From NCBI RefSeq assembly GCF_036588685.1, contig NC_086373.1:77066001-77130000 (forward strand): a DNA stretch of 64,000 nt, in the 5' to 3' direction. Each line of letters starts with the position of its first letter. The stretch's first letter is position 1. The notes below the pieces were generated by a model. The model was not told the DNA's origin, did not search any database, and saw nothing but the letters and a program-made list of their open reading frames with translations. Origin of the DNA: Mytilus trossulus. Lineage: Eukaryota. Positions 2,903-47,379 of the stretch are shown piece by piece. The position numbers and the translations under genes are program-made.

Positions 2903-3320
2903 AAAATTGAGAATGGAAATGGGGAATGTGTCAAAGAGACAACAACCCGACCAAAATAAAAAAAAAAACCACAACAGCAGAAGGTCACCAACAGGTCTTC
3001 AATGTAGCGAGAAATTCCCGCACCCGGAGGCGTCCTTCAGCTGGCCCCTAAACAAATATATACTAGTTCAGTGATAATGAACGCCATACTAATTTCCAAA
3101 TTGTACACAAGAAACTAAAATTTAAATAATACAAGACTAACAAAGGCCAGAGGCTCCTGACTTGGGACAGGCGCAAAAATGCGGCGGGGTTAAACATGTT
3201 TGTGAGATCTCAACCCTCCCCCTATACCTCTAACCAGTGTAGAAAAGTAAAAGCATAACAATACGCACATTAAAATTCAGTTCAAGAGAAGTCCGAGTCT
3301 GATGTCAGAAGATGTAACCA
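2903..3320 (+). repeat. Dispersed SINE-like repeat (AAATTGAGAATGGAAATGGGGAATGTGTCAAAGAGACAACAACCCGACC family), longest copy
   Basis: The same head recurs at ~4232, 9468, 15444 and 22820 (+) and at ~26640-26770 and ~30440-30770 (-). Confidence 0.85.
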
Positions 3321-3439
3321 ATAGTGTATATATCTATTAAAGTGTAAATCAAGGGAAAATAATGTAAACTATCTGCATTGAGACCTATTAAAAGGTATTT
3401 TGAGGGGGGAAGAAAGAAGTGAGGGTGAGTCCATGGGAG

Positions 3440-3975
3440 GTAATCCCCACCCCCTTCAATTTGAGAATATGCTATTATCTTGTAAACGGTACAGATCCCC
3501 ACCCCTAAACCATATATATTCGTGAATGGGACGATAAAACAAATGAAATGAAATTAAAAGGAGGTCTTTGGGGGTTACCCCACCCTGTTCAATTTGAGAA
3601 TGTGCTATTATCCTGTGAACGATCCAGATCCCCACCCCTAAACCATATATATTCTTGTCGGGGACAATAAAATGAATGAAATAAAATAAAAGGGAAGTCC
3701 CACCCCCTCTAGTTTGAAAACTTGTAAACGGTCAAGATCCACACCCCTAAACCATATATATATATTCTTGTACATGTTGTATAGAACAATAAAACAAATC
3801 AAATGAAATATAGGGAGAGTCCATGGGGTCACCCCCACCCCTACATGTTTGAGAAACTTTCAAATGGTTGAGATCCCCAGTGGTTAGGTGAAAAAATTTC
3901 CAGATCCCTGATCCCCACCCTCAAACCATATATTTTCTTGTATGAGACAATAAAACAAATCAAATGAATATAGGA
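3440..3975. repeat. Degenerate tandem repeat, roughly 110-165-bp units
   Basis: Motif AGATCC(C)CACCCCTAAACCATATATATT...ACAATAAAACAAAT recurs at ~3493, 3626, 3735 and 3902. Confidence 0.7.
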
Positions 3976-5134
3976 CCATCTCCTTTGTCTTGGGTTGGGA
4001 ACCCCCGCTTTTTAAAATGGTTGGATCCGCCCCGGCATACCATTTAGCTAGCTAGAAATCAAACAAGGAAATTAACAGTGTAGGCAACTGTTTTGAATTT
4101 TAAAAAAAGCCTTTTACATATATAACAATGTTAAATTTTTTGTGCATTTATTTTTGCTTACCGTATTTTCAATAATGGACAAATTGCATGATTGAATATT
4201 GTAATTTAAGAAAAATCAGCATACATGTTATAAAATGGGAAGTGGAAACTGGGAATTTGACAAAGAGACAACAACCCAATCAAAGAGCAGACAACAGCCG
4301 AAGGTCACCTATGGGTCTTCAATGCAGTGAGAAGATTTCGGCACTGGTCTTCAGCTCATAAATATGTATCAGAAATGAAAATGAGATACAGCTTTCAGTT
4401 GAATTAATAAAAACCTCACAATAAGTTCTGAATATCAGAATATACAGTATTGCAAGATTCTCTCAAAATGTACACATAGAGCTGAAAAACTGTAAAATTA
4501 ATCATGCTTATTTAACATTAAAGTCCATGGAGTCCATCTAAATATGCATAGTCTCGTACACAGGAATATAAGTATGCAGTAGACATCAAGTTTCCAAAAA
4601 TAAGAGTATCTATGCCATTAATTTACGACAAGATTTTCAATCAAGTAATAATTTCGGTTAGTTTAAATATTTTGGAGGTTAGTATGACCTCCATTTTGGT
4701 GATGATATTTTCGTTTTAAAGTTGAGAAAATTGTTTGTACCAACAAAAATAAAAACACAAAGTCAATCTAGAATTAATTTTTTATCATTTTTTTATGTTT
4801 AGGTTGTCAGCAAGATGAAAAGGACAAGTATGCAGTTCAAAATTCAAAATGTGGATAAGCTGAGGTTCAAGGTCTTACCTTTGCAGATTTTCATATTTTG
4901 CATGAATGAATTCAAAGGTTATATGATGGACGGCAGAGAAAGAAAAAAAAAACTTTTCAATTATCCTGCTCCTGGATAAATGTAAAACATCTTGTTTTTC
5001 GGTAAGTTTTATGCTCTGTTTTGATAGTGTTAGTGACTTCATCTGTCCAGTCTTTCCTCTAAATTGTATCCTCTTTTAGTTTTTGGTGAGTGTTCGCCAT
5101 GAATTTCAGTAAGTAATTTGTGGATTTACATGTA

Positions 5135-5340
5135 CTGTAAATTCAGAAATTATTGCGAGGTTTATATTATTGCGAATAATGCGACAGAGTTGTAAACGCA
5201 ATAAATAGAACTCGCATTTTGAAATATTTTAACTGAATTTAGCACGACTCTTCTCAAAATCGGAAAAATTAAAATCACATTCAAGTTTAAAATGACAAAA
5301 TCGCAATAATAAGTGCACGCAATAATTTCTGAATTTACAG
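5135..5340. mobile_element. Tc1/mariner-type MITE (TA TSD), copy 1
   Basis: TA|CTGTAAATTCAGAAATTATTGCG...CGCAATAATTTCTGAATTTACAG|TA. Confidence 0.85.
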
Positions 5341-6117
5341 TATATACTCAAAATTTAGTACTAATATAAATGGGATTTTAGCATGACATCCTGTCAAATG
5401 CTTGTTAATCATGTTTATGTTCCAGAACATACAAGTATTTGGACTGTACGCATACAGTCTGCCCAATTTTAAGAAGTTGGTCAAGTTTATTAGAAACAAA
5501 TGTACAGTACAGATCAACATAACTGAAATCTTTGACTTTAATATATTAATACAAAAAGTTTAAATGCAATTAAAATAAAAACACAGGTTTGGTCGAGCTG
5601 GTACCAGACAGTACAAGTATACTTAAATGGTCTGACTGTACACTTATGGTGGGACTGTAAGTTCTGGACCGTAAACGTAAGATCCAAATACTGATATGGT
5701 CTGGAACATTTATACATGTCTTAAAATTAATATCAAACACATTGGTGTTTTTGAACTTGGTAATAAGTTATTTTATAGAACTATAATGTTTTGGGATATC
5801 AAAATCAAAAATATGCCATTTTTACTTTTAATAAAGATGTATGTATAAATGTATATTAAAATGAGACAGCAAGCCAACAACACAACAAATAAGGATGAAA
5901 CATACATAATTTTTTTGTATCAATGTTATAATTTCCAATATGTTCAAAGAGTTCAAGGTATTTTTTCATTGAAATAAAACACAAATTGAAATTTGTCAGA
6001 ACTTCAAAAGCTTAAAGAAATATTGTTTCTGTTGTCTACATTTTGTATAATATATTGCAAATTCTTGTGAATAATGGAATGTTATTATAGTTGTCAGTTT
6101 TAACATTGATCTTTATA

Positions 6118-6315
6118 CTGTAAATTCATAAATTATTGCGTGCATTTTTAATTGCGATTCTGTCATTTTAGACTTAAATGCGATTTTACGATTTTGAGAA
6201 AAATCCTGTTTAATCCATATAAAATATTTCATAATGCGAGTTTAAATTATTGCGTTTACAACTCTGTTGCATTTTTCCCAATAAAAAAAAACTCGCATTA
6301 ATTCTGAATTTACAG
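6118..6315. mobile_element. Tc1/mariner-type MITE (TA TSD), copy 2, opposite orientation
   Basis: Same TIRs; the internal sequence is the reverse complement of 5135-5340. Confidence 0.8.
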
Positions 6316-7196
6316 TATATATATTATGTATACAACTTGGGAAAATACCCAAATGTTATAAAGAAGAACAAATTAATTAATTGTTATATGGTATTAGAAT
6401 AGGAAGATGTGGTATATTGCTTATTTGACAACCCTCCATCAGAGACCAAAGGATGTAGGCCTTTAGCAACTGATGACACTGGACAACCTTTAACAATCAG
6501 TAAAATCCATACCGCATAGCTATTTTTATGGAAAATCATATTATTGCTACATGTTTGCAAACAATTTTGTATAATACATTACTTTAGATTTTATTGGTTC
6601 TTTTTCAGAAGGATTGAAATTCACCACCTAGAATAAATGGAGAAAACATAAAAACAAGACCAGAATAAATTCAAAGACAAAAGTTGGATCAGTTATTATT
6701 TTCAACACTCAGTCAATGATTTGAAGTTCTTTTAAATACAAAAAAATATTGAAACCACAATATTGTCAAAGTTCTGTGCTGAATGACCAAAAAGTGGACT
6801 ATACCATCAAACAATGCTGGATGATAAGAAACTATTAATGTTTTGTGTTGAGGGATATTGTGAAAAAAAATAGATTTACTTAAATAGCTACTAGTACATG
6901 TAGTATATTAAGCCTATTAACAATAGAGTTTTTGTTGATTTCAAATGGGAAATAATTGTGTTTCAAGAAAGTATTCTATAATTCATGAATAAACATATAT
7001 TGATACTTACATTATCTGCTTTGTTGTTTAAAAGTTTAGTTTTGAACAGTTATAGAACAATATGCTAAATTAACATTTCCCAAGAAAAAAAGATATTCAA
7101 TTAAAAAGATTCATATTATAATAATTTACTACCAAATAGAATACATTGTAACATACACATTACTGTATATTTATATCTATATATTTACAATTAGAA

Positions 7197-7420
7197 TCCC
7201 ATAGGATTTTAATTTGTCCCATGGGATATTAAAAATCCCATGGGATAATAAAAATCCCATGGGATTTTTTTTGTCCCATGGGACAACAAATATCCCATGG
7301 GACTACAATTATCCCATGGGACAAAAAAAAATCCCATGGGATTTAACCAAAATCCCATGGGATAATGGTCAATCCCATGGGATTTTACCCTGTCCCATGG
7401 GATATTGAAAATCCCATGTT
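7197..7420. repeat. Phased array of the palindrome TCCCATGGGA with variable 9-11-nt spacers
   Basis: Perfect copies start at 7217, 7236, 7255, 7274, 7293, 7312, 7332, 7353, 7373 and 7393; degenerate copies at 7197 and 7412; period 19-21 bp. Confidence 0.95.
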
Positions 7421-8745
7421 TTTATAATTCAAATTGCAAAATAAATATGAAAAAAACAGTAGAAAACCAATGAAATTATTGAATCCCATGTAATTACGCA
7501 CATTTTGGTCATATACATGATATTGTAGCTTTTGTTTGAGGCGGCGGCGGATTTGCAAATGAGTGTTTTGCAAATTAAAAGTGTCCAGTGTTTACAGGCT
7601 TCTCATTTTGGACAGGCACATACATAATGTGGAGGGAGTTAAACATTTTTGCGAGCACCGATTCCTCCTTTTACCCCGGAAAATGGTGTAACACACACCA
7701 TAAGAACAGACTGAAAACTTTAAATGAAAAGAATTTTTCAGTAGAGATCAGCAAGAGGCACAAAGACCAAATAACATAGAAACCAAAGACACAAGACACA
7801 AATTATCGACATAAAAGTAGACGATGATACTAAAATCTAGTCGAAAGCCAATTACAACTAATAAATGAATAATAGTATCCAAGAACAAGAAAAAAATTTA
7901 TCAGTACACATTCAACAGCTTCAGTAAAAAAAATATCAAATATTTTGCACGGAATATATTATGAGGTGTTATGGTGTGAGATCCATTTAACAATAACGAT
8001 TCCTGTTGTAATGTAGATTTTTATTCATAATGACAGTTCTTTCGTAACAGAAGTTACTTTTGAATTGCGTTTTAACACCTTTTTTTTTTTTATATATATA
8101 TAATATATAAACAAATATCCCGAAACCTTCTTAGTACCTTTATCCTTTCCATTCATGATAAACCTGTATCCGAAGCAGGAAATGAAGTATCAAGTATATC
8201 TAATTTCCGTTAATCTCCCGCGTCCACTTCCGCTCATTTACATTAAAAATTTATTATTTTCTTCATGGTTGGATCATAGTATGGTGTCCGTGCATTTACC
8301 CGCTAAATCCAAAATGTATCAAATAAAGGCAACAGTAGTATGCTGCTGTTCAATAGTCATAATTCGATCAAACAATAATAAATCCGAGTAACAAACAAAG
8401 AACCTAGGGAAACACATCAATCATAAAAGGAAACTAACGACAACAGAGTTGGAGTATAATATATAGGAACGGGCTGCCATATTTCTGACTTGGTACAGGA
8501 CATTTTTACGGAAGGAACAACAGACATTGTTGCAGTACTAAATATTTATCAAAACTTTACTTTACAACAAAAAGATAACCAAAAACCGAAAAAGAGACGA
8601 ATAAACTTTTATTTGACACAAAAAGATGTCCAGCATCTACACATATGTTACAGGATATGTAGTGTATAATTTGTTAAAGTAGAGAGAAGTGAAGTGTTAC
8701 AAGGTTGATAATAATTTTGAAGTGTAAAAGTTTCCGTTGTTGGGG

Positions 8746-40900: not shown

Positions 40901-42743
40901 AAATAGTGATTGAAAGATTCATAACACTTTGAAAGGATAATTCAGACACGTGACGTGTTACACGGGGAGCATGTTTGTTTACAAATAATAATGTCACATG
41001 ATCGCGCACTGACCTCGCATGCTGCATCACCCTTACAATTCACTAATACATGTACATAACCATTTTCATGCAAACATGCAACGTGAATGTGATTGGTTAT
41101 CAAATAATACAAAAATAATGCATAAACCGTTGAAGAAGAAATTATTTCATCAAATAGATTGGATTTTCACTTTCGACACGAATTATAGGTCGAGTTGACA
41201 TTCCTGTCATCGGAGATAGTATTGAGATAAATGGGATAAAACGGACCGTCAAAAAGGTCTAGAGAAGCACATCAGTAGAACCTTAACATAAATAAGTAAT
41301 ACTTACCAACATTTCTCTAATTGATAACATATAGAACTGAAATTACACAAAATACCGGTAAATAATTTTGTTGTGATGCTGGTAAATTGGCGCTAAATAA
41401 ATATTCTTACTCCTATTGCTTCATGTAAAAAAAAATGTATAGAATTGAATTCGACTACAGTTCAGAATAAAAAAAACGTGCATATGCAAAAGCAGGTAAT
41501 ATGTTAATGATAAAGTGTGTATAAATTTTCGTAAACGAAGTTACCCGTATACTTCACCAAGAATTACATTTGAGCGCAAAGTTCTGTATGTGTGATAGAT
41601 TTGGTTGGTTTATGTAACATAATTTAGACTGGGATCCTGGCTAATCTTGATCTTACGACGCGCAGCTAGATTGGGCCGGATCCCAGACTAATGTAACATC
41701 GTAGAACTCAAGGTAACGGATTTTTTTGCGTTGCTATCAGATGATTGAGGCCATCTATTTTTATTGCGGGTTCCACATATTTCCAGCAAAATATAAATAG
41801 GATGGAGGATCTGTGTATTCACATTATTTGTAAAACTCTCCTTATTCATGTGAAGCGTGTGCTTTACATCGAGGCTTATTCTTTACATCGAGGCTCCTTA
41901 TTATGCTAATCATTGACGCCACTGTACTTCAACCAAGCAGACAATGTTTATTTGGGGCATTCGATCGATTTTTACTCAGATTTTGGAATATTTCAATCGA
42001 AATTATAGAAAAATGGAATGTTGCTGGTACATATAAAATAGAAAATGATGAATACTTTTAGCTAAAGATAATTTGGATGGGGGTTCTGTGTATTCACATT
42101 ATTTGCACAACTCTCCTTACTGATGCCATATTTTGGAATTTCCGTGACCTAAATGGTTCGCGAAAATTAATATTTTTATATATAGTATAGTAATAAGCCA
42201 CACGCATGCAACGGCACGTAATAGTCAGAGTTGTGACTGAGTGCGGAAATATGAAGATAGTAACTCGAAAATGATACAATTAATCCTGGACTGTAGTCGT
42301 TTCGAGTGGTATCGTGTGTTAGAGAAAAATGAAATAAATTTGGTGGAATCAATCACTAGAAGCCTGTGTTACTCGCTCCATGAAAAGCGTACTGTGCTCC
42401 TTGAAAGTAAATAAACATTTAAAAGTTGTAAGGTTTACCAAACTCATAGGCTGTAAATAGATAAAATTGTTTAAAGATAATGTATAGTGACTGGAAACAG
42501 ATGTAAATATAAAGCAACAAAATTTTACTGGATGAACTCCAGGTTCTCCTGATAAAGGAGGGATTTACAGAAGGTAACAGGTAACAGGAACGTGCCTTTC
42601 CCCGAACTTAATTTTCCCTCTAAACATTAGCACATGATTTCTACACAAACAGACAAACAAACTCCTAATCAACAACTTATAAAGGATAACACGATGCATG
42701 ATATAAGTCATATTACACCTAAGCGAAAGTAGCTTAAACCAAT

Positions 42744-45700
42744 ATGTTTAAAATAGATGCTTTTCGCACTAAAATGTTACGTTCGTTGATTTCTAAGATT
42801 GAAACCTGTCGAATTTTGCCATGCCATATTCATTCTCAGAGCAATAAGACAGAGAGAGAAAGACTTTTAGCAAAACTGCTAACAAAGCATTATGTGCCTG
42901 ATATCGAGACTGGTAAGAAAATATGAATGATGGCGTTATACACACTTTATTATTACTGTCATGACGTGTGAACCTCTAGTTCTGAACATCTTCTGAAATA
43001 GTCTACAGTTTTCATTGTACACACAAATGTGCCCTCTTGCTACCAAAGTGAAATTTCTGTCTTCAACACAAAAGTCTTTCAATAGTCCATTGTCAATATA
43101 ACAATTACAGTGACAGCTAGCTAGTCTCTAAAGATTTCAAACGAATGTCAAATTATAAAATGTATGCCTAAAACTTAAAAGTATAATTTTTGGCAGGAAT
43201 GAATTATATGGAAAATGAATAATGAACAATAACTATCTTGATTGGATAAATCCGATAATCCACTGGTACCAATGTAAGAACCTATATATATATATTTAAA
43301 ACGAAGGCAATTATTAGTTGATCACCCATGAGACCTGTAAAATGCATATAAAATGAAAGCAGTTTTTATCTTGGTTAAATATAAAAAATCCCACATTTAA
43401 GACTAACTGCATTGTACATGTATCATTGTTGTTAACGTAAACATTTAAGAAAATTATGTACATGATCAACATACAAAATTCTCATTTCAGTAAAAAGTTA
43501 CAAAATAAGATTTCCTGAGCCTGTCAAACTGATAGAGGGATTATATCAGCCATTGAAAGAATCACGTAGAGTAGGAGCACTATCTTTTCACTGTACATCA
43601 AAGTTTGATGGCAGATTATGGAAGGCTTGTCTCCAGTTAACATTTCCATTAAGATTTACTTGTGTTGGTGTACATTCAGACCTTGATAAAGCTAAGGAAA
43701 ATGCATACCTTGAAGCCTGTGAAATGTATTGGGTGAGTAATTATAACATTTCTTTACAAAGAAAAGAACGAAATGTCCAATTTGTTGCAGGTTTGTGTTG
43801 TTTTTTCATACTATTATTTGTATATTTTAACTAATTTTATTTGTTAAAAAAAAAGTAACATGTTCAACTGTATTTTCAAATGTTGATTGATTTTGATTTA
43901 AGTTTTGTAAATTTATAAAATGATTTGAATTAAAGTAGATATCATTTATGTATATTTTTTAATCATTTATCTGTATGATTATAAAACATCTTATTGCAAG
44001 TTGGTGTATTCATACTGCATATTGTTTATGAAATCAATAATGATACCAATAAAAACAATATTCAAAGATCTAACAACCATGATAACAGTGGTGAATTGGT
44101 AAACTTTTATATTAAGTTAATTGAAAGAAATGATAATTTTAACCAAATTGTATCTAAATCTGGTCCCAGTAAACAACATCTTTGTAAAACTAATGATGTG
44201 CTATCCTGATTAAAAAAAAAGGTACAACCAAACTTGTAAAGCATAGCTTTGTATCTATGGAAGAATTCAGTCAAGGTTTTAGGTATTTTGTGGTTACAAA
44301 ATCTCTGCCTAGATATTTTACCCATTATACACCGATAAAGCTCATTTAAATCCAAAATGTCACAAAAACCAAAAGCATAGCAAATGAGTTGGGATATAAA
44401 TATATATGAAAGGAGCATCACCATCCAAGAAAGGAATAGTATCAACAGGGAACGAAAAATGTCCTTTTTGTTATACATATTTATTTTGAAGTTATATACT
44501 CGCACAACAAAGAAAACTTCTGATGACATTTTAATATTTAATTTCATAACAGTGTTAAAGTGATACTTCATAACCTTTCTTACTGTTTTATATCCAGTAT
44601 TTAGGTCTCTTATATAACAATGGGTGTGTAACTCCAGAGAGGCTTTGGGAACTTATAGAACAGATGTATGTAGAAATTGATGGACCACAAGTCAGACGAG
44701 AAAAAAACTTTTATTATTGTACTAGTCAAATTGTTATGGATGGAATTAGTAGCTGGTTGACAGAAATTAAAATTCGCTGGCCACTGATATTATGTGTGAA
44801 TGCAACTGGAACCTCTCCATACAACAGTCAGTTTGAAGCAGCATTACTAGCTGCTATACAGCTCAAGGTTAGTCTCATCATTAAAGCCATGTGGAGGTTA
44901 AAAAAAAATGCCACTTTGAATATCAATTCACCTAAAAAAATTGGTTGCATGGGTTAAACTTATAGATTATTTTGATTTTGAAAAAGAGAGGGATTTTCTT
45001 GGATTAAGGAGGCACACGGGTACAAAAATTTTGGCAAAAAAATTAAATATTTGTTTTTTCATTACAAATTTTATTTATTTCACTATTAGTTATTACTTTA
45101 TGATAGAGTACAAAAAAAAAACAATTAAAAAAATCTATTCGGTTCAGCTGCAGATGACTTTTAAAATGTTTATATCATTGAAAAATCTCCAAATTATCTC
45201 CCTTTGGTGCAAAAATGCCATTTTTGGCAGGAAAACTGAAATATCTTTTTAAACTCAACGGTGACCTTTATTTTTATTATTGTTTTCAAATGAGCTGTAC
45301 ATAAACCAAATAATTATTAAATTTAAGCGATTTCTGTAATTTAGTTCTTTTTTTATTTTTATTTTACCTCTATTTCTCCTATTAGTTCTACAGAAAAAAG
45401 GACATTTACAAAAATGTATGCTTCTTTTGAAGGCTGTTTGTGAGCTTAAATGAGTAGTGAACATATGACCTCAAAACGGGTTTGGTTAGATCTCTCACGG
45501 GACATATCAGAAAACGGGAGCGATGAGAGATTGGTTTTTAATTAGATTGGTCTGAAACGATGTGAAAATCAATGAAAATCTAAATATTCTAAAGAAATGA
45601 AGTGGCTTTTCCCAAAAAAACTGAACTCTGAGGAAAATTCAAAACTAATCAAATGGCAAAATCAAAAGCTCAAACACATCAAACGAATGGATAACAACTG

Positions 45701-46665
45701 TCATACTCCTATTTTATACAGGCATTTTCTTCATAAGAAAATGGTGGATTGAACCTGGTTTTATAGCCAGCTTATCCTCTCACTTGTATGATAGTTGCAT
45801 CAAATTCCATTATATTGACAACAATGTGTTAACAAAACAAACAGTCATAAGAGGTGAAAATGTGAAAAATATAACATAGCTACTTTTACTGTGTCAAGTT
45901 TAAAATAGAAATGAATGAAAAATATTACATAAAAGTTTTAATATCTATAGTTTAAAGTTTTGAAAAAGATGAAGTTCTTATATGAGATATTTTACTTTTC
46001 AGTGTCATTGCTTTCTTGATGGAAAAAATAACTTAAAATCTCCACAGAGGAGAAGTCTAAGGAAAAGTGTTTTGTTTAATGAATTTGTACCGAGTTTAGA
46101 GAATTTTGATGCAGATTGTATAATTCATGTAGATGCTTCCTTTTATGGATTTGGTGCATATTTGAACATTAAAAATGAAGGTAAGGTCCGTTGGTTTACA
46201 GAACTTTGGCCGCAGGAAGTACAATCGAAATACTTGTCTTTTCAAGTTAAAACCTTCAGTTCAAGGTTTGCAGAAATGTATGCCTTTGTCACAGCCTGTT
46301 ATACATGGAAACATAAGTTTGTCAATAAGCGTGTTCTCTGTTATTCGGACTGTCTGTCAACTGTAGACATTGTAAATAGAGGATTATATGTGAACAGGAA
46401 AATATATTCTAAATATTCAAAGTTAACAAGAATTCTACAATCATTAGTGGACAATTATAACATTGAATTTTTAGCCTGTCACAAGCAAAGAGAATCAAAT
46501 AGACTAGCAGATTTGTTATCAAGACATTGTGTAGAAGAATTTAGGAAAGAAATTCCAGAAGCTTTCCAGAAATCAAAGAAAGTTAAACAACTTACATTTT
46601 GTTATCCACTGGTTGAAAATGACAGAGTAAAAAATCTAGAAAACCATCACAAAGAAACAAAATAA
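42744..46665 (+). CDS. Putative mitochondrial protein: two DHX30-like dsRNA-binding domains plus a DIRS-type RNase H domain, ~447 aa; exons 42744-42912, 43491-43732, 44598-44867, 46003-46665
   Basis: Three GT-AG introns (phases 1, 0, 0) give a stop-free 1344-nt CDS. Motifs FPEPVKLIEGLY...LQLTFPLRFTCVG...AKENAYLEACEMYWYLGLL and IKIRWPLILCVNATG...FEAALLAAIQLKCHCFLDGKNN, then HVDASFYGFGAY...AEMYAFV...SDC...H...NRLADLLSR. AATAAA at ~46915. Confidence 0.8.
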
Positions 46666-47379
46666 AAGAAAGAAAATTTTATACAGATTCATAATTAAGC
46701 TTAATATCATATGCTTATTTACTGGTTATGAGGAAAATACCAAATTTGTTGTCCCCTCACAGATGCTGTCCAGGGGACTAATTCGATTGCTTTTATTTTT
46801 TGGTCACTGTAATGAATCTCAATCATCAATGGCAAAGAATTCTATTACCTAATACATCTAATAGGTCCAATATTTTTGCTAAAAAGTCAACATTACATAT
46901 ATTTTTGTTTAAATAATAAAGGTTGATCATGTCGATTTGTCTATTCATTTTGAGATAGGAACTTAATGTTAGCTAGACTTAATATTGACTATAGAGATGT
47001 TATGAGATATTGTATAAACGAGACAGAAAATACGTCTTTTAAAGGTCTTAATAGACAAGTGTCAACAGTGTTCTAAATCATTCATAGTATAGAATAAAAT
47101 ACTTAGTCTAGTAGATTGATTGATAATTGTTTTTTTTGTCCAGTGACAAATATGCCATGCATGTTCAGGACGAGAACAACTTTTAAAATAAATGCAATAG
47201 GGATGAACTGGGAAGACTGGTGGTAAATTTGGAATGCAACTGGACAATGATGATAAATTGGATTGGAAGAGAAACTTTCCCTTGTGGTGGCCTCTAGTGC
47301 GCCACATACTAACTCCTCAGGAGTTGTTGCAAGGGTTCTTATCCCTCTACACACTGATACATAATATTCAACGTTCCCA

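Follow-up and report, generated by a model that had tools for sequence, protein, structure and literature searches.

A complete, spliced and expressed host gene of 447 codons, present as a single copy, lies on the plus strand between positions 42607 and 46954 of the window, by which we refer to the whole 64-kb stretch of Mytilus trossulus DNA that was analysed. The protein that it encodes consists of a variable basic leader, two homologous modules with the dsRNA-binding domain (dsRBD) fold, a type-1 RNase H and a conserved basic tail (Table 1).

Table 1. Parts of the gene and of its transcript, in window coordinates
Feature	Position	Strand	Remarks
Exon 1, 5' untranslated part	42607..42743	+	Longest transcript contig begins at 42607
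Exon 1, coding part	42744..42912	+	56 codons + 1 base
Intron 1	42913..43490	+	578 nt, GT..AG; joint in 4/4 runs
Exon 2: module 1, DHX30-type dsRBD fold (alpha-beta-beta-beta-alpha)	43491..43732	+	Profiles; colinear with orthologs
Intron 2	43733..44597	+	865 nt, GT..AG; joint in 4/4 runs
Exon 3: end of module 1 helix and module 2, second dsRBD fold	44598..44867	+	AF2, Foldseek, ortholog-only profile
Intron 3	44868..46002	+	1135 nt, GT..AG; mostly high-copy repeats (about 45000-45900)
Exon 4, start: last turn of module 2 helix and linker	46003..46098	+	Alignment to orthologs
Exon 4, RNase H domain, retroelement (DIRS-like) origin	46099..46569	+	Pfam, TE ORF matches, carboxylate columns, Foldseek
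Exon 4, family-specific basic C-terminal tail, motif F.K..P.A....KK.K.L.F	46570..46665	+	Conserved in orthologs
3' untranslated region	46666..46954	+	AATAAA at 46915-46920; longest contig stops at 46954

Transcript evidence was taken from four public runs (X1, X4, X8 and X21), which belong to three studies and carry two organism labels. In all four, a single contig of 1540-1773 nt joins the four exons at 42912/43491, 43732/44598 and 44867/46003, and the unique stretches of the introns have zero depth. A preliminary description of this DNA had proposed that four ORF fragments are spliced through GT-AG sites with matching phases into a stop-free protein of about 447 amino acids, and the transcripts bear this out: each of the three joints that it had put forward for checking by transcript reads, including that between exons 3 and 4, was found in every run; the phases match; and the spliced coding frame of 1344 nt comprises 447 codons plus TAA with no internal stop. 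The donors of junctions 1 to 3 read CTG/GTAAGA, TGG/GTGAGT and AAG/GTTAGT, and each of the three acceptors is rich in pyrimidines and ends in CAG. An in-frame stop can be read in the window three codons upstream of the ATG. The stop codon (TAA at 46663-46665) is altered in one run by a T>A change at 46663, a stop loss that adds 11 codons. Among the transcript variants in exons 2-4, four are synonymous and none is non-synonymous; the non-synonymous variants number two in total, and both fall in exon 1. The leader encoded by exon 1 is basic and poorly conserved, with its second Met at codon 11. This exon gave no Pfam match and no alignment to the orthologs described below, and its leader may be an organellar presequence. 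A patch of high-copy repeat lies within intron 1 at about 43170-43323.

Exons 2, 3 and 4 are each single-copy in the 1.3-Gb genome, and no processed copy of the gene is present in the assembly. The preliminary description had named a multicopy TE fragment as one of the findings that would speak against a host gene, but exon 4 occurs once, and its nearest relatives in the genome, which are RT-RNase H ORFs, are only 33-41% identical to it over about 150 amino acids. When the DIRS-like RT-RNase H and recombinase ORFs of the genome were used as queries, no RT or recombinase match was found anywhere in the 64-kb window; the DIRS-like ORFs match exon 4 only, and solely with their own RNase H part, leaving the C-terminal tail of exon 4 uncovered. 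A DEAH helicase query found nothing in the whole window either, and a helicase domain (DExH core with HA2 and OB) is absent from all exons and orthologs. The earlier remark that no RT, recombinase or helicase lies nearby thus holds for the window in its entirety. As there is no RT or recombinase in the window and exon 4 is single-copy, it derives from an element of the DIRS order but is not itself such an element.

Full-length orthologs with the same layout were found in unionid, venerid, dreissenid and pteriid bivalves, in limpets and in heterobranch gastropods (Potamilus, Sinanodonta, Mercenaria, Dreissena, Pinctada, two species of Patella, Aplysia, Elysia, Plakobranchus, Bulinus and Candidula), and they are colinear in at least 12 named mollusc species. 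These proteins are 419-481 amino acids long, or 640-775 in the heterobranchs. The window's exons are colinear with them, and exons 2, 3 and 4 are 56, 43 and 55% identical to P0186, a closer ortholog, which means that the three modules have been kept at similar rates. Profiles made from the orthologs only, with no sequence from the window's species, match exon 2 at E=1e-20 and exon 3 at E=8e-8, values that are far beyond chance. Intron positions are conserved in the family; the intron 3 acceptor has the same position in P0002 and P0003, where the ORFs read through into residues CH. The Dreissena gene model is split at a position matching intron 2. In the databases the orthologs are labelled 'uncharacterized', and some have been auto-named 'RNase H type-1 domain-containing'; those deposited entries that were looked up carry no dsRBD annotation, and several of the gene models are split. 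No publication describing the family was found in the literature searched. Bivalves and gastropods separated more than 500 My ago, and the presence of the same gene in both indicates an old nuclease family that has gone unstudied. We regard it as almost certain that this is a real, conserved chimeric gene.

Exons 2 and 3 had been likened in the preliminary description to the N-terminal dsRBDs of DHX30 (alias KIAA0890), with the strings FPQPKNLL, LHIKWP, AERQAAAAAC and WGLL quoted for that protein. The family profile matches the PDB chain 2db2_A, which is the first dsRBD of human DHX30, at E=1.6e-6, with profile positions 77-163 aligned to chain residues 10-95, corresponding to module 1, and the HMMER alignment shows all four strings exactly as quoted. 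In this search no other PDB dsRBD was matched at E<10; the window's exon 2 alone gave no match to 2DB2, and the family profile was needed. The structure 2DB2 is cited for DHX30's N-terminal dsRNA-binding domain (PMC6943125). Comparison of the two modules by hhalign (97.3% probability, E=2e-11) shows module 2, which also has the dsRBD fold, to be paralogous to module 1, with homology to DHX30 established for module 1 only.

Structure models agree with this assignment. In the AF2 model of the ortholog P0008, module 1 (H81-94, E102-108, E113-120, E126-132, H135-152) and module 2 (H170-186, E200-209, E212-221, E227-233, H236-253) both show the alpha-beta-beta-beta-alpha topology of a dsRBD, which spans about 70 residues, and have pLDDT values of about 80-95, and AF2 of the window's own exon 3 gave H13-28, E38-47, E50-59, E65-71 and H74-89. 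Nearly all of the top 50 Foldseek matches of the exon 3 model are dsRBDs; the modules of P0008 and of the window's exon 3 retrieved the dsRBDs of TARBP2, MLE, Loqs, R2D2, DCL4, Staufen, ILF3 and DHX9, and the P0008 model returned tandem-dsRBD proteins. Pfam dsrm (PF00035) and related models gave no match at E<=10 for the window's exons; dsrm matched no family member, and a faint Dicer_dimer match (E=0.07) among the orthologs was the sole Pfam hint of a dsRBD. Atlas feature matches to the dsrm, Dicer_dimer and DSRM_DHX29 clusters scored <0.9 and serve as leads only.

The basic residues with which dsRBDs contact dsRNA lie in helix 1 and in the KK motif that opens helix 2. In human DHX30N, R24 and K66/K67 are required for dsRNA binding; the N-terminal domain of DHX30 binds dsRNA with a Kd of about 40 nM and carries all of the anti-influenza activity of the protein (PMC6943125). 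In the mollusc family, the position aligned to R24 is proline in most members, the one aligned to K66 is never basic, and the one aligned to K67 is K or R in 9/16 (the window has D and L at the latter two). The net charge of the modules is close to zero, which makes canonical binding of dsRNA doubtful; they may bind protein instead.

The RNase H domain carries four acidic residues exactly where the preliminary description had placed them: D at codon 271 (GAT, 46132-46134, context VDAS), E at codon 318 (GAA, 46273-46275, context AEMYA), D at codon 343 (GAC, 46348-46350, context YSDC) and D at codon 397 (GAT, 46510-46512, context LADLLS). These carboxylates, and an N, are invariant in all 16 of the full-length family members (16/16). 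The fold was read from the model of P0008, to which the window's exon 4 is linked by alignment at 40% identity. Its elements (E293-299, E303-309, E315-321, H335-349, E358-363, H366-374, H384-402, E406-411, H418-424) follow the type-1 order beta1-beta2-beta3-helixA-beta4-helixB...beta5-helixE, and the carboxylates sit in beta1, helix A, the end of beta4 and helix E, which are the canonical structural positions. Foldseek with this domain returned RNase HI of S. tokodaii, E. coli and Halobacterium as well as foamy-virus and HIV RT, with probabilities of 0.94-1.00; fold comparison had been suggested at the outset, and it recovered the dsRBD and the RNase H folds alike. The Pfam score of exon 4 is marginal for RT_RNaseH (PF17917; 25.0 bits against a cut-off of 24.8) and below the cut-off for RT_RNaseH_2 (PF17919; 28.5 against 29.8) and RVT_3 (PF13456; 17.8 against 21.6). 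Those of the orthologs are scattered on both sides of the cut-offs, and PF00075 gave sub-threshold matches in two orthologs only. The equivalent of H124 in E. coli RNase HI varies, being W in heterobranchs and Y in some bivalves. The domain is probably a catalytically active RNase H.

Concerning the source of this domain, the TE copies L002 and L006 carry an ORF with RVT_1 and RNase H, followed by an overlapping Phage_integrase (PF00589) ORF that scores 31.7 and 31.4 bits, respectively, against a Pfam cut-off of 27.1. The distant TE matches are RT-RNase H without rve, and the single Gypsy-type match, P0133, is an outlier in the tree. By these comparisons, the nearest relatives of the exon 4 RNase H are those of tyrosine-recombinase (DIRS-like) retrotransposons, and the earlier classification of exon 4 as DIRS-type agrees with the RT and tyrosine recombinase carried by its nearest TE relatives. 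The tree with DIRS RNases H that had been proposed unites the RNase H domains of the family in a single clade (SH-aLRT 99), which is separate from the TE copies and has a long stem; P0059, the only unlabelled row inside this clade, carries the family motifs. Such a pattern fits one capture before the bivalve/gastropod split, followed by vertical descent. The motifs DAS..G.GA, E..A, SD and N..AD.LS are common to the family and to DIRS-order RNases H. However, the domain in DIRS-order TEs is the C-terminal part of a multicopy RT-RNase H ORF with a recombinase ORF next to it, whereas the mollusc gene is a single-copy, intron-bearing host gene that lacks both RT and recombinase and to which a conserved basic tail has been added. 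The genome holds more than 150 DIRS-like RNase H matches, many of them in 540-aa open frames, apparently intact copies. To our knowledge, no host gene has been traced to a DIRS-like element before, and the literature searched names none.

In its layout the protein resembles eukaryotic RNase H1 (RNASEH1). In both, a duplex-binding module, which a mitochondrial leader may precede, forms the N-terminal part, and a flexible linker separates it from a type-1 RNase H with a DEDD active site; the expected chemistry, the cutting of the RNA strand of hybrids, would be alike. The convergence on RNase H1 that the preliminary description pointed out is upheld in the sense that the same layout is made from different parts: the binding module consists of two dsRBD folds and not of a hybrid-binding domain of the Cauli_VI type (PF01693 gave no match in the gene or its orthologs), and the nuclease belongs to the retroelement branch (RT_RNaseH, RVT_3; nearest DIRS-like) and not to cellular PF00075. 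Matches to the canonical hybrid-binding domain were found elsewhere in the genome, and one of them looks like an intron-split host gene; a canonical RNase H1 is therefore probably present, there would be no gap to fill, and the gene would be an addition and not the RNase H1 ortholog. With DHX30 it shares two tandem N-terminal modules behind a leader, module 1 being homologous to dsRBD1 (motifs FP.P..L, W.A.L...WP and GLL). However, R24 and K66/K67 are not kept, and as neither the gene nor the window has a helicase core, it is not a DHX30 ortholog. RNase III, Drosha and Dicer likewise combine a dsRBD fold with a metal-dependent RNA nuclease, and the best fold matches of module 2 in Foldseek include dsRBDs of RNase III, DCL4 and Dicer partners; the mollusc protein differs from these enzymes in its RNase H fold, in its N-terminal, non-canonical dsRBDs and in an expected substrate that is hybrid, not dsRNA. 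The vertebrate genes NYNRIN and CGIN1, with RNase H and integrase domesticated from LTR retroelements, are also host chimeras in which a retroelement RNase H segment has been fused to RNA-metabolism domains and long kept, but they arose in another host lineage from a Ty3/retrovirus donor, have NYN/R3H partners and retain the integrase.

Taken together, the core reading of the preliminary description, namely two DHX30-type dsRBD-fold modules and a DIRS-type RNase H with intact catalytic residues, is supported. That the RNase H took the place of the helicase core, as the preliminary description went on to infer, is a conceivable evolutionary scenario. Only some orthologs have a leader that resembles a presequence; its occurrence in several of them suggests an organellar (mitochondrial) site. 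DHX30 also works in mitochondria and has a link to their RNA granules. We propose that: the DHX30-type modules would tether the protein to an A-form duplex, either an RNA:DNA hybrid or structured RNA, or alternatively to an RNP recognised by DHX30-type domains; the RNase H domain would use the usual two-metal mechanism to cleave the RNA strand in hybrids; and the protein, with its targeting leader, duplex-binding module, linker and RNase H, would be a functional analogue of RNase H1. According to a 2026 preprint, DHX30 limits RNA:DNA hybrids and unwinds R-loops. We lean slightly towards the overall statement, function included, of a conserved chimeric gene whose active RNase H is tethered by DHX30-type modules. 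The removal of hybrids in mitochondria or the nucleus as its main role is put forward tentatively, as a proposal that may well prove wrong. Rather doubtful as a whole is the most far-reaching version, in which the gene would be the first host gene from a DIRS-order element, and this Cambrian-age fusion of the element's still active RNase H with DHX30-derived dsRBDs a second, mollusc-specific RNase H1-like enzyme that degrades hybrids where DHX30 unwinds them, be it in mitochondrial RNA granules or at nuclear R-loops.

Exon 4 shares ancestry with the RNase H of TEs and has marginal scores in Pfam, and the RNA nature of the runs is only guessed; one might suppose, then, that a decayed piece of a retrotransposon has been combined with ORFs that are there by chance, or that the gene is an artefact of assembly or annotation. 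However, the exact GT..AG joints in four of four runs from three studies, the single copy of the three domain exons, the colinear full-length orthologs in at least 12 named species and the matches of exons 2 and 3 to profiles from other species refute this idea, as do the conserved intron positions and a window free of RT and recombinase remnants, and we reject it as extremely improbable. Another role for a genuine gene would be defence, with the protein acting as a cytoplasmic anti-retroelement or antiviral effector: the modules would direct it to dsRNA of viruses or retroelements, or to intermediates of reverse transcription, and the captured RNase H would degrade the RNA template early, or cut dsRNA like some retroviral and archaeal type-1 RNases H. 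There are precedents for TE enzymes turned against TEs, and a dsRNA-cleaving side activity has been reported for Sulfolobus tokodaii RNase HI and retroviral RTs, which are among the best structural matches of the RNase H domain; moreover, DIRS-like copies that look intact abound in the genome. The homologous N-terminal domain of DHX30 binds dsRNA and holds anti-influenza activity (PMC6943125). However, the gene is single-copy and evolves conservatively, with no sign of the fast turnover or the expansion that immune genes usually display, several orthologs have a presequence-like leader, and the dsRNA-contact residues of DHX30N are not kept; we therefore consider a defence role unlikely.

The lack of those contact residues and of the canonical ones, the near-neutral charge of the modules and the failure of Pfam dsrm to match would be expected if the protein were a non-catalytic adaptor, in which type-B dsRBDs bind proteins and the RNase H fold is a scaffold for nucleic acid or protein without cleavage, for example in an RNA granule or a ribosome-assembly complex. 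Many dsRBD-fold domains do bind proteins, such as Staufen dsRBD5 and the Dicer dimerisation domain; Staufen and Dicer-dimerisation-type domains are among the fold and feature matches obtained here, and the varying His124 equivalent points in the same direction. Nevertheless, the four metal-binding carboxylates and the Asn have stayed invariant in 16/16 members from bivalves to gastropods, which is hard to reconcile with an absence of catalysis, and in the P0008 model the carboxylates occupy their canonical positions. An adaptor is thus improbable, and a tethered, hybrid-cutting RNase H is the reading that we retain.

The family is undescribed in the literature searched, and the author of the preliminary description knew of no described gene with this architecture, whereas the orthologs were already known as deposited, uncharacterized proteins. 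Host genes domesticated from transposons usually encode transposases, integrases, gag or env, and it is unusual for an RNase H to have preserved its catalytic residues from before the bivalve/gastropod split. By joining a duplex-binding module to an RNase H, the fusion reproduces with unrelated parts the principle on which RNase H1 is built. Its targeting modules are of the type found in DHX30, which has been connected with mitochondrial RNA granules, with antiviral restriction and, by the recent preprint, with R-loop resolution. With the dsRBDs unannotated in the orthologs and gene models split, the family could now be given a proper name and annotation. With an expressed, single-copy gene that also occurs in well-studied molluscs, Aplysia among them, the idea is directly testable, and the family offers a handle on what non-canonical DHX30-type dsRBDs recognise.

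The preliminary description read four open reading frame fragments in the window as the exons of one 447-aa protein. Their phases match, and in a local frame check they join through GT-AG sites into 447 codons plus TAA with zero internal stops (see the table). The three donors are GTAAGA, GTGAGT and GTTAGT, the acceptors are all pyrimidine-rich with a terminal CAG, and an in-frame stop lies three codons 5' of the ATG. The predicted joints were recovered in transcript contigs. In each of four public sequencing runs (X1, X4, X8 and X21, from three studies with two organism labels, their type only guessed to be RNA), all four exons lie on a single contig of 1540-1773 nt. After the stated shifts of the cuts, the contig joints fall at 42912/43491, 43732/44598 and 44867/46003 (4/4 runs). 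In runs matching the locus, roughly one third of its sampled words are present, a fraction equal to that of its exons, and depth is zero over the unique intron stretches in 4/4 runs. As exons 2 and 3 are present in one copy each in the assembly, there is no processed DNA copy there; given this and the zero intron depth, the joined form derives from transcripts. The earliest contig start is at 42607 and the latest end at 46954, with an AATAAA at 46915, a little 5' of that end.

Coding exons of the gene and the helicase frames found on C9 of the same genome
Feature	Sequence	Coordinates	Strand	Basis or composition
Exon 1, coding part	Window	42744-42912	+	Sequence reading and local frame check
Exon 2	Window	43491-43732	+	Sequence reading and local frame check
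Exon 3	Window	44598-44867	+	Sequence reading and local frame check
Exon 4	Window	46003-46665	+	Sequence reading and local frame check
DEAH11-like protein	L021 (G000:C9:3820001-3830000)	3246-8042	+	Two adjacent open frames, 428 + 1130 aa

The transcripts also carry variants. Four synonymous and zero non-synonymous variants were found in exons 2-4, and two non-synonymous ones in the leader; this small sample is compatible with constraint on the domains of the gene. The change 46663 T>A in X21 is a natural stop-loss allele, in which TAA becomes AAA and the frame gains 11 codons, ending at the TAA at 46696-46698. High-copy repeats occupy 43170-43323 in intron 1 and 45000-45900 in intron 3. Their summed contig depth ranges from tens to thousands in 4/4 runs, over many partial, mismatched contigs with loose ends; they probably represent SINE- or MITE-like elements that are transcribed at many loci.

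Window exons were searched one at a time, while full-length analyses used orthologs from the databases. An exhaustive HMMER protein search with exon 4 gave 239 matches, the first 34 of which form a distinct set (E from 1e-66 to about 1e-10), with the RT-RNase H proteins of transposons following from about 3e-10. Full-length members of this family are 419-475 aa long in bivalves and limpets (Potamilus, Sinanodonta, Mercenaria, Dreissena, Pinctada and two Patella species) and 640-775 aa long in heterobranchs (Aplysia, Elysia, Plakobranchus, Bulinus and Candidula). They are deposited as hypothetical, uncharacterized or auto-named “RNase H type-1 domain-containing” proteins, and the deposited orthologs have no dsRBD annotation. 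The heterobranch members P0021-P0029 have an N-terminal extension of about 250 aa and an insert of about 100 aa in module 2, C-terminal to the conserved motif GRGFKIILEQ (columns ~425-575 of the alignment A3), apparently within the loop between beta1 and beta2 of the second dsRBD.

Exons 2, 3 and 4 of the window are colinear with module 1, module 2 and the RNase H domain of the full-length orthologs. The transcript-derived protein P0186 (481 aa), a closer ortholog, shares 56, 43 and 55% identity with them, respectively. When profiles were built from other species only, exon 2 was matched at E=1e-20 and exon 3 was matched at E=8e-8. Exon 3 alone matched only a 97%-identical fragment among proteins. 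Two intron positions are common to the window gene and other species: the ORFs P0002 and P0003 run through the same acceptor into the residues “CH”, and in Dreissena a split gene model is interrupted precisely where exon 2 meets exon 3. Among 122 RNase H domains placed in a tree, those of the family group as one clade with a long stem (SH-aLRT 99), within which the subclades are consistent with heterobranchs, limpets and bivalve orders; the sole unlabelled row inside it, P0059, has the family motifs. Bivalves and gastropods split in the Cambrian, and the simplest history, as read from these sequences, would be one RNase H capture before that split followed by vertical descent.

Exon 4 had been described as a DIRS-type RNase H with four acidic residues, and the named codons indeed encode D, E, D and D. 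Pfam scores are marginal (RT_RNaseH, 25.0 vs 24.8; RT_RNaseH_2, 28.5 vs 29.8; plus RVT_3), and exon 4 had no match to PDB sequences at E<=1. The expected fold emerged from structure searches with an AF2 model of the ortholog P0008 (mean pLDDT 74; domains 80-95), for which Foldseek matched archaeal and bacterial RNase HI and the RT structures of foamy virus, HIV and HERV-K. In this model the catalytic residues occupy beta1, helix A, the terminal part of beta4 and helix E, which are the positions of D10, E48, D70 and D134 of E. coli RNase HI. The D, E, D and D columns and the Asn preceding the last Asp are invariant in 16/16 full-length members. The window keeps a histidine as the counterpart of H124; some lineages of the family have W or Y there. 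A basic tail with the motif KK.KKL.F, C-terminal to the RNase H domain, is conserved in the family and lies outside the transposon matches.

As to its origin, the sole full match of exon 4 in the 1.30-Gb genome is itself; the multicopy transposon fragment that would have spoken against a gene was not encountered there. Its next best matches share 33-41% identity with it and mostly fall within open frames of about 540 aa, which encode RVT_1 and RNase H. A second frame, for a tyrosine recombinase, overlaps them (PF00589 at 31.7 and 31.4 bits, cut-off 27.1). Judged by these frames, the elements with the nearest relatives of exon 4 are of the DIRS order, in agreement with the type first assigned. 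When the proteins of these elements were compared with all six frames of the window, exon 4 alone was matched, solely by their RNase H part. As had been claimed, the 64-kb window holds no RT or recombinase remnant in that search, and no DEAH helicase core. Because RT and recombinase are absent and the copy is single, the gene is not itself a DIRS element. Elsewhere in the genome, several chromosomes (loci L002-L012) carry numerous DIRS-like copies that look intact. Each copy has an RT-RNase H frame of 540 aa and, overlapping it, a frame of about 350-360 aa for a tyrosine recombinase. Since several pairs of copies are identical, the element family seems to have been active recently.

The N-terminal modules were said to be dsRBDs of the DHX30 type. 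A Pfam search of exons 1-3 gave no match. The family profile had one significant match among all PDB sequences, 2db2_A (“KIAA0890 protein”, E=1.6e-6), over module 1, and no other dsRBD entry at E<10. Exon 2 alone found only chance matches in the PDB and did not recover 2DB2, so the DHX30 link is visible only with the family profile. The DHX30 strings given in the preliminary description are present in the printed 2db2_A chain. Our literature search found no paper pairing KIAA0890 with DHX30; 2DB2 is cited for the N-terminal 152 residues of DHX30, a segment whose Kd for dsRNA is about 40 nM and in which the anti-influenza activity of DHX30 resides (PMC6943125). The search with A3, led by the 775-aa Aplysia protein, for DHX30-sized relatives returned only the query itself and one transposon.

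The predicted dsRBD fold was seen in models. That of P0008 contains two alpha-beta-beta-beta-alpha units, and Foldseek places the tandem-dsRBD proteins TARBP2, MLE, Loqs-PB and R2D2 among its best matches. Window exon 3, folded with the family alignment, takes the same alpha-beta-beta-beta-alpha form (pLDDT 75), and nearly all of its best 50 Foldseek matches are dsRBDs. A comparison by hhalign shows the two modules to be homologous (97.3%, E=2e-11), and an atlas feature search gave solely dsRBD-clan clusters, at scores <0.9 that serve as leads only. In human DHX30N, R24 and K66/K67 are needed for dsRNA binding (PMC6943125), and these residues are mostly not kept in the family: the R24 position usually holds Pro, no member has a basic residue at K66, and 9/16 members have K or R at K67. 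In the window, D and L stand in place of K66/K67, and the charge of the two modules is near neutral.

In the search for this genome's own DHX30, from a partial duplication of which the modules might derive, 18 OB_NTP_bind matches were listed. The intronless candidate on C9 was ruled out, being a DEAH11-like RING/IBR helicase with DEAD, Helicase_C, OB_NTP_bind, RRM, KH_DEAH11, RING and IBR domains, whose helicase part most resembles DHX15, DHX8 and Prp22. Five further loci (40 kb each) contained no module-like exon. Other matches lie within very long open frames, namely 1410, 1749 and 1762 aa in a cluster at G000:C10:59465009-59546002, and 3015 aa at G000:C1:80695252, about 3.6 Mb from the window; these frames are unusually long as exons for this genome.

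The gene is not DHX30, because it lacks the helicase, and it is not RNase H1, as it lacks the Cauli_VI hybrid-binding domain (PF01693), which is found elsewhere in the genome. There are 25 Cauli_VI matches, many of them inside open frames of about 700 aa resembling mobile elements, and one, in two pieces 2 kb apart (G000:C1:71157762-71159864, minus strand), looks like the intron-bearing host RNase H1. Since Cauli_VI domains occur in the genome, including this host-like match, replacement of a lost RNase H1 was set aside. Neither the family nor any DIRS-derived host gene was found described in the literature searched, in keeping with the earlier impression that no gene of this architecture had been described, and the orthologs are deposited as uncharacterized. 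The gene is a type-1 RNase H with an N-terminus of duplex-binding fold, derived from a domesticated transposon domain.

The results show the architecture, expression, age and intact catalytic set of the gene. In its layout the protein is an analogue of RNase H1, and on the favoured reading it would be an active RNase H, brought to RNA:DNA hybrids or structured RNA by its DHX30-type modules. Rival readings are a nuclease for defence against retroelements or viruses and a non-catalytic adaptor; the invariance of the four carboxylates across the family argues against the latter. By composition, its leader is basic and acid-poor in several orthologs and less clearly so in others. In Patella and P0012 the first acidic residue comes at 57-62, and in Mercenaria and Dreissena it comes at 38. 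According to a 2026 preprint, DHX30 limits RNA:DNA hybrids and also unwinds R-loops, which makes it plausible that the gene product would be a sibling of DHX30, one that may degrade hybrids where DHX30 unwinds them.
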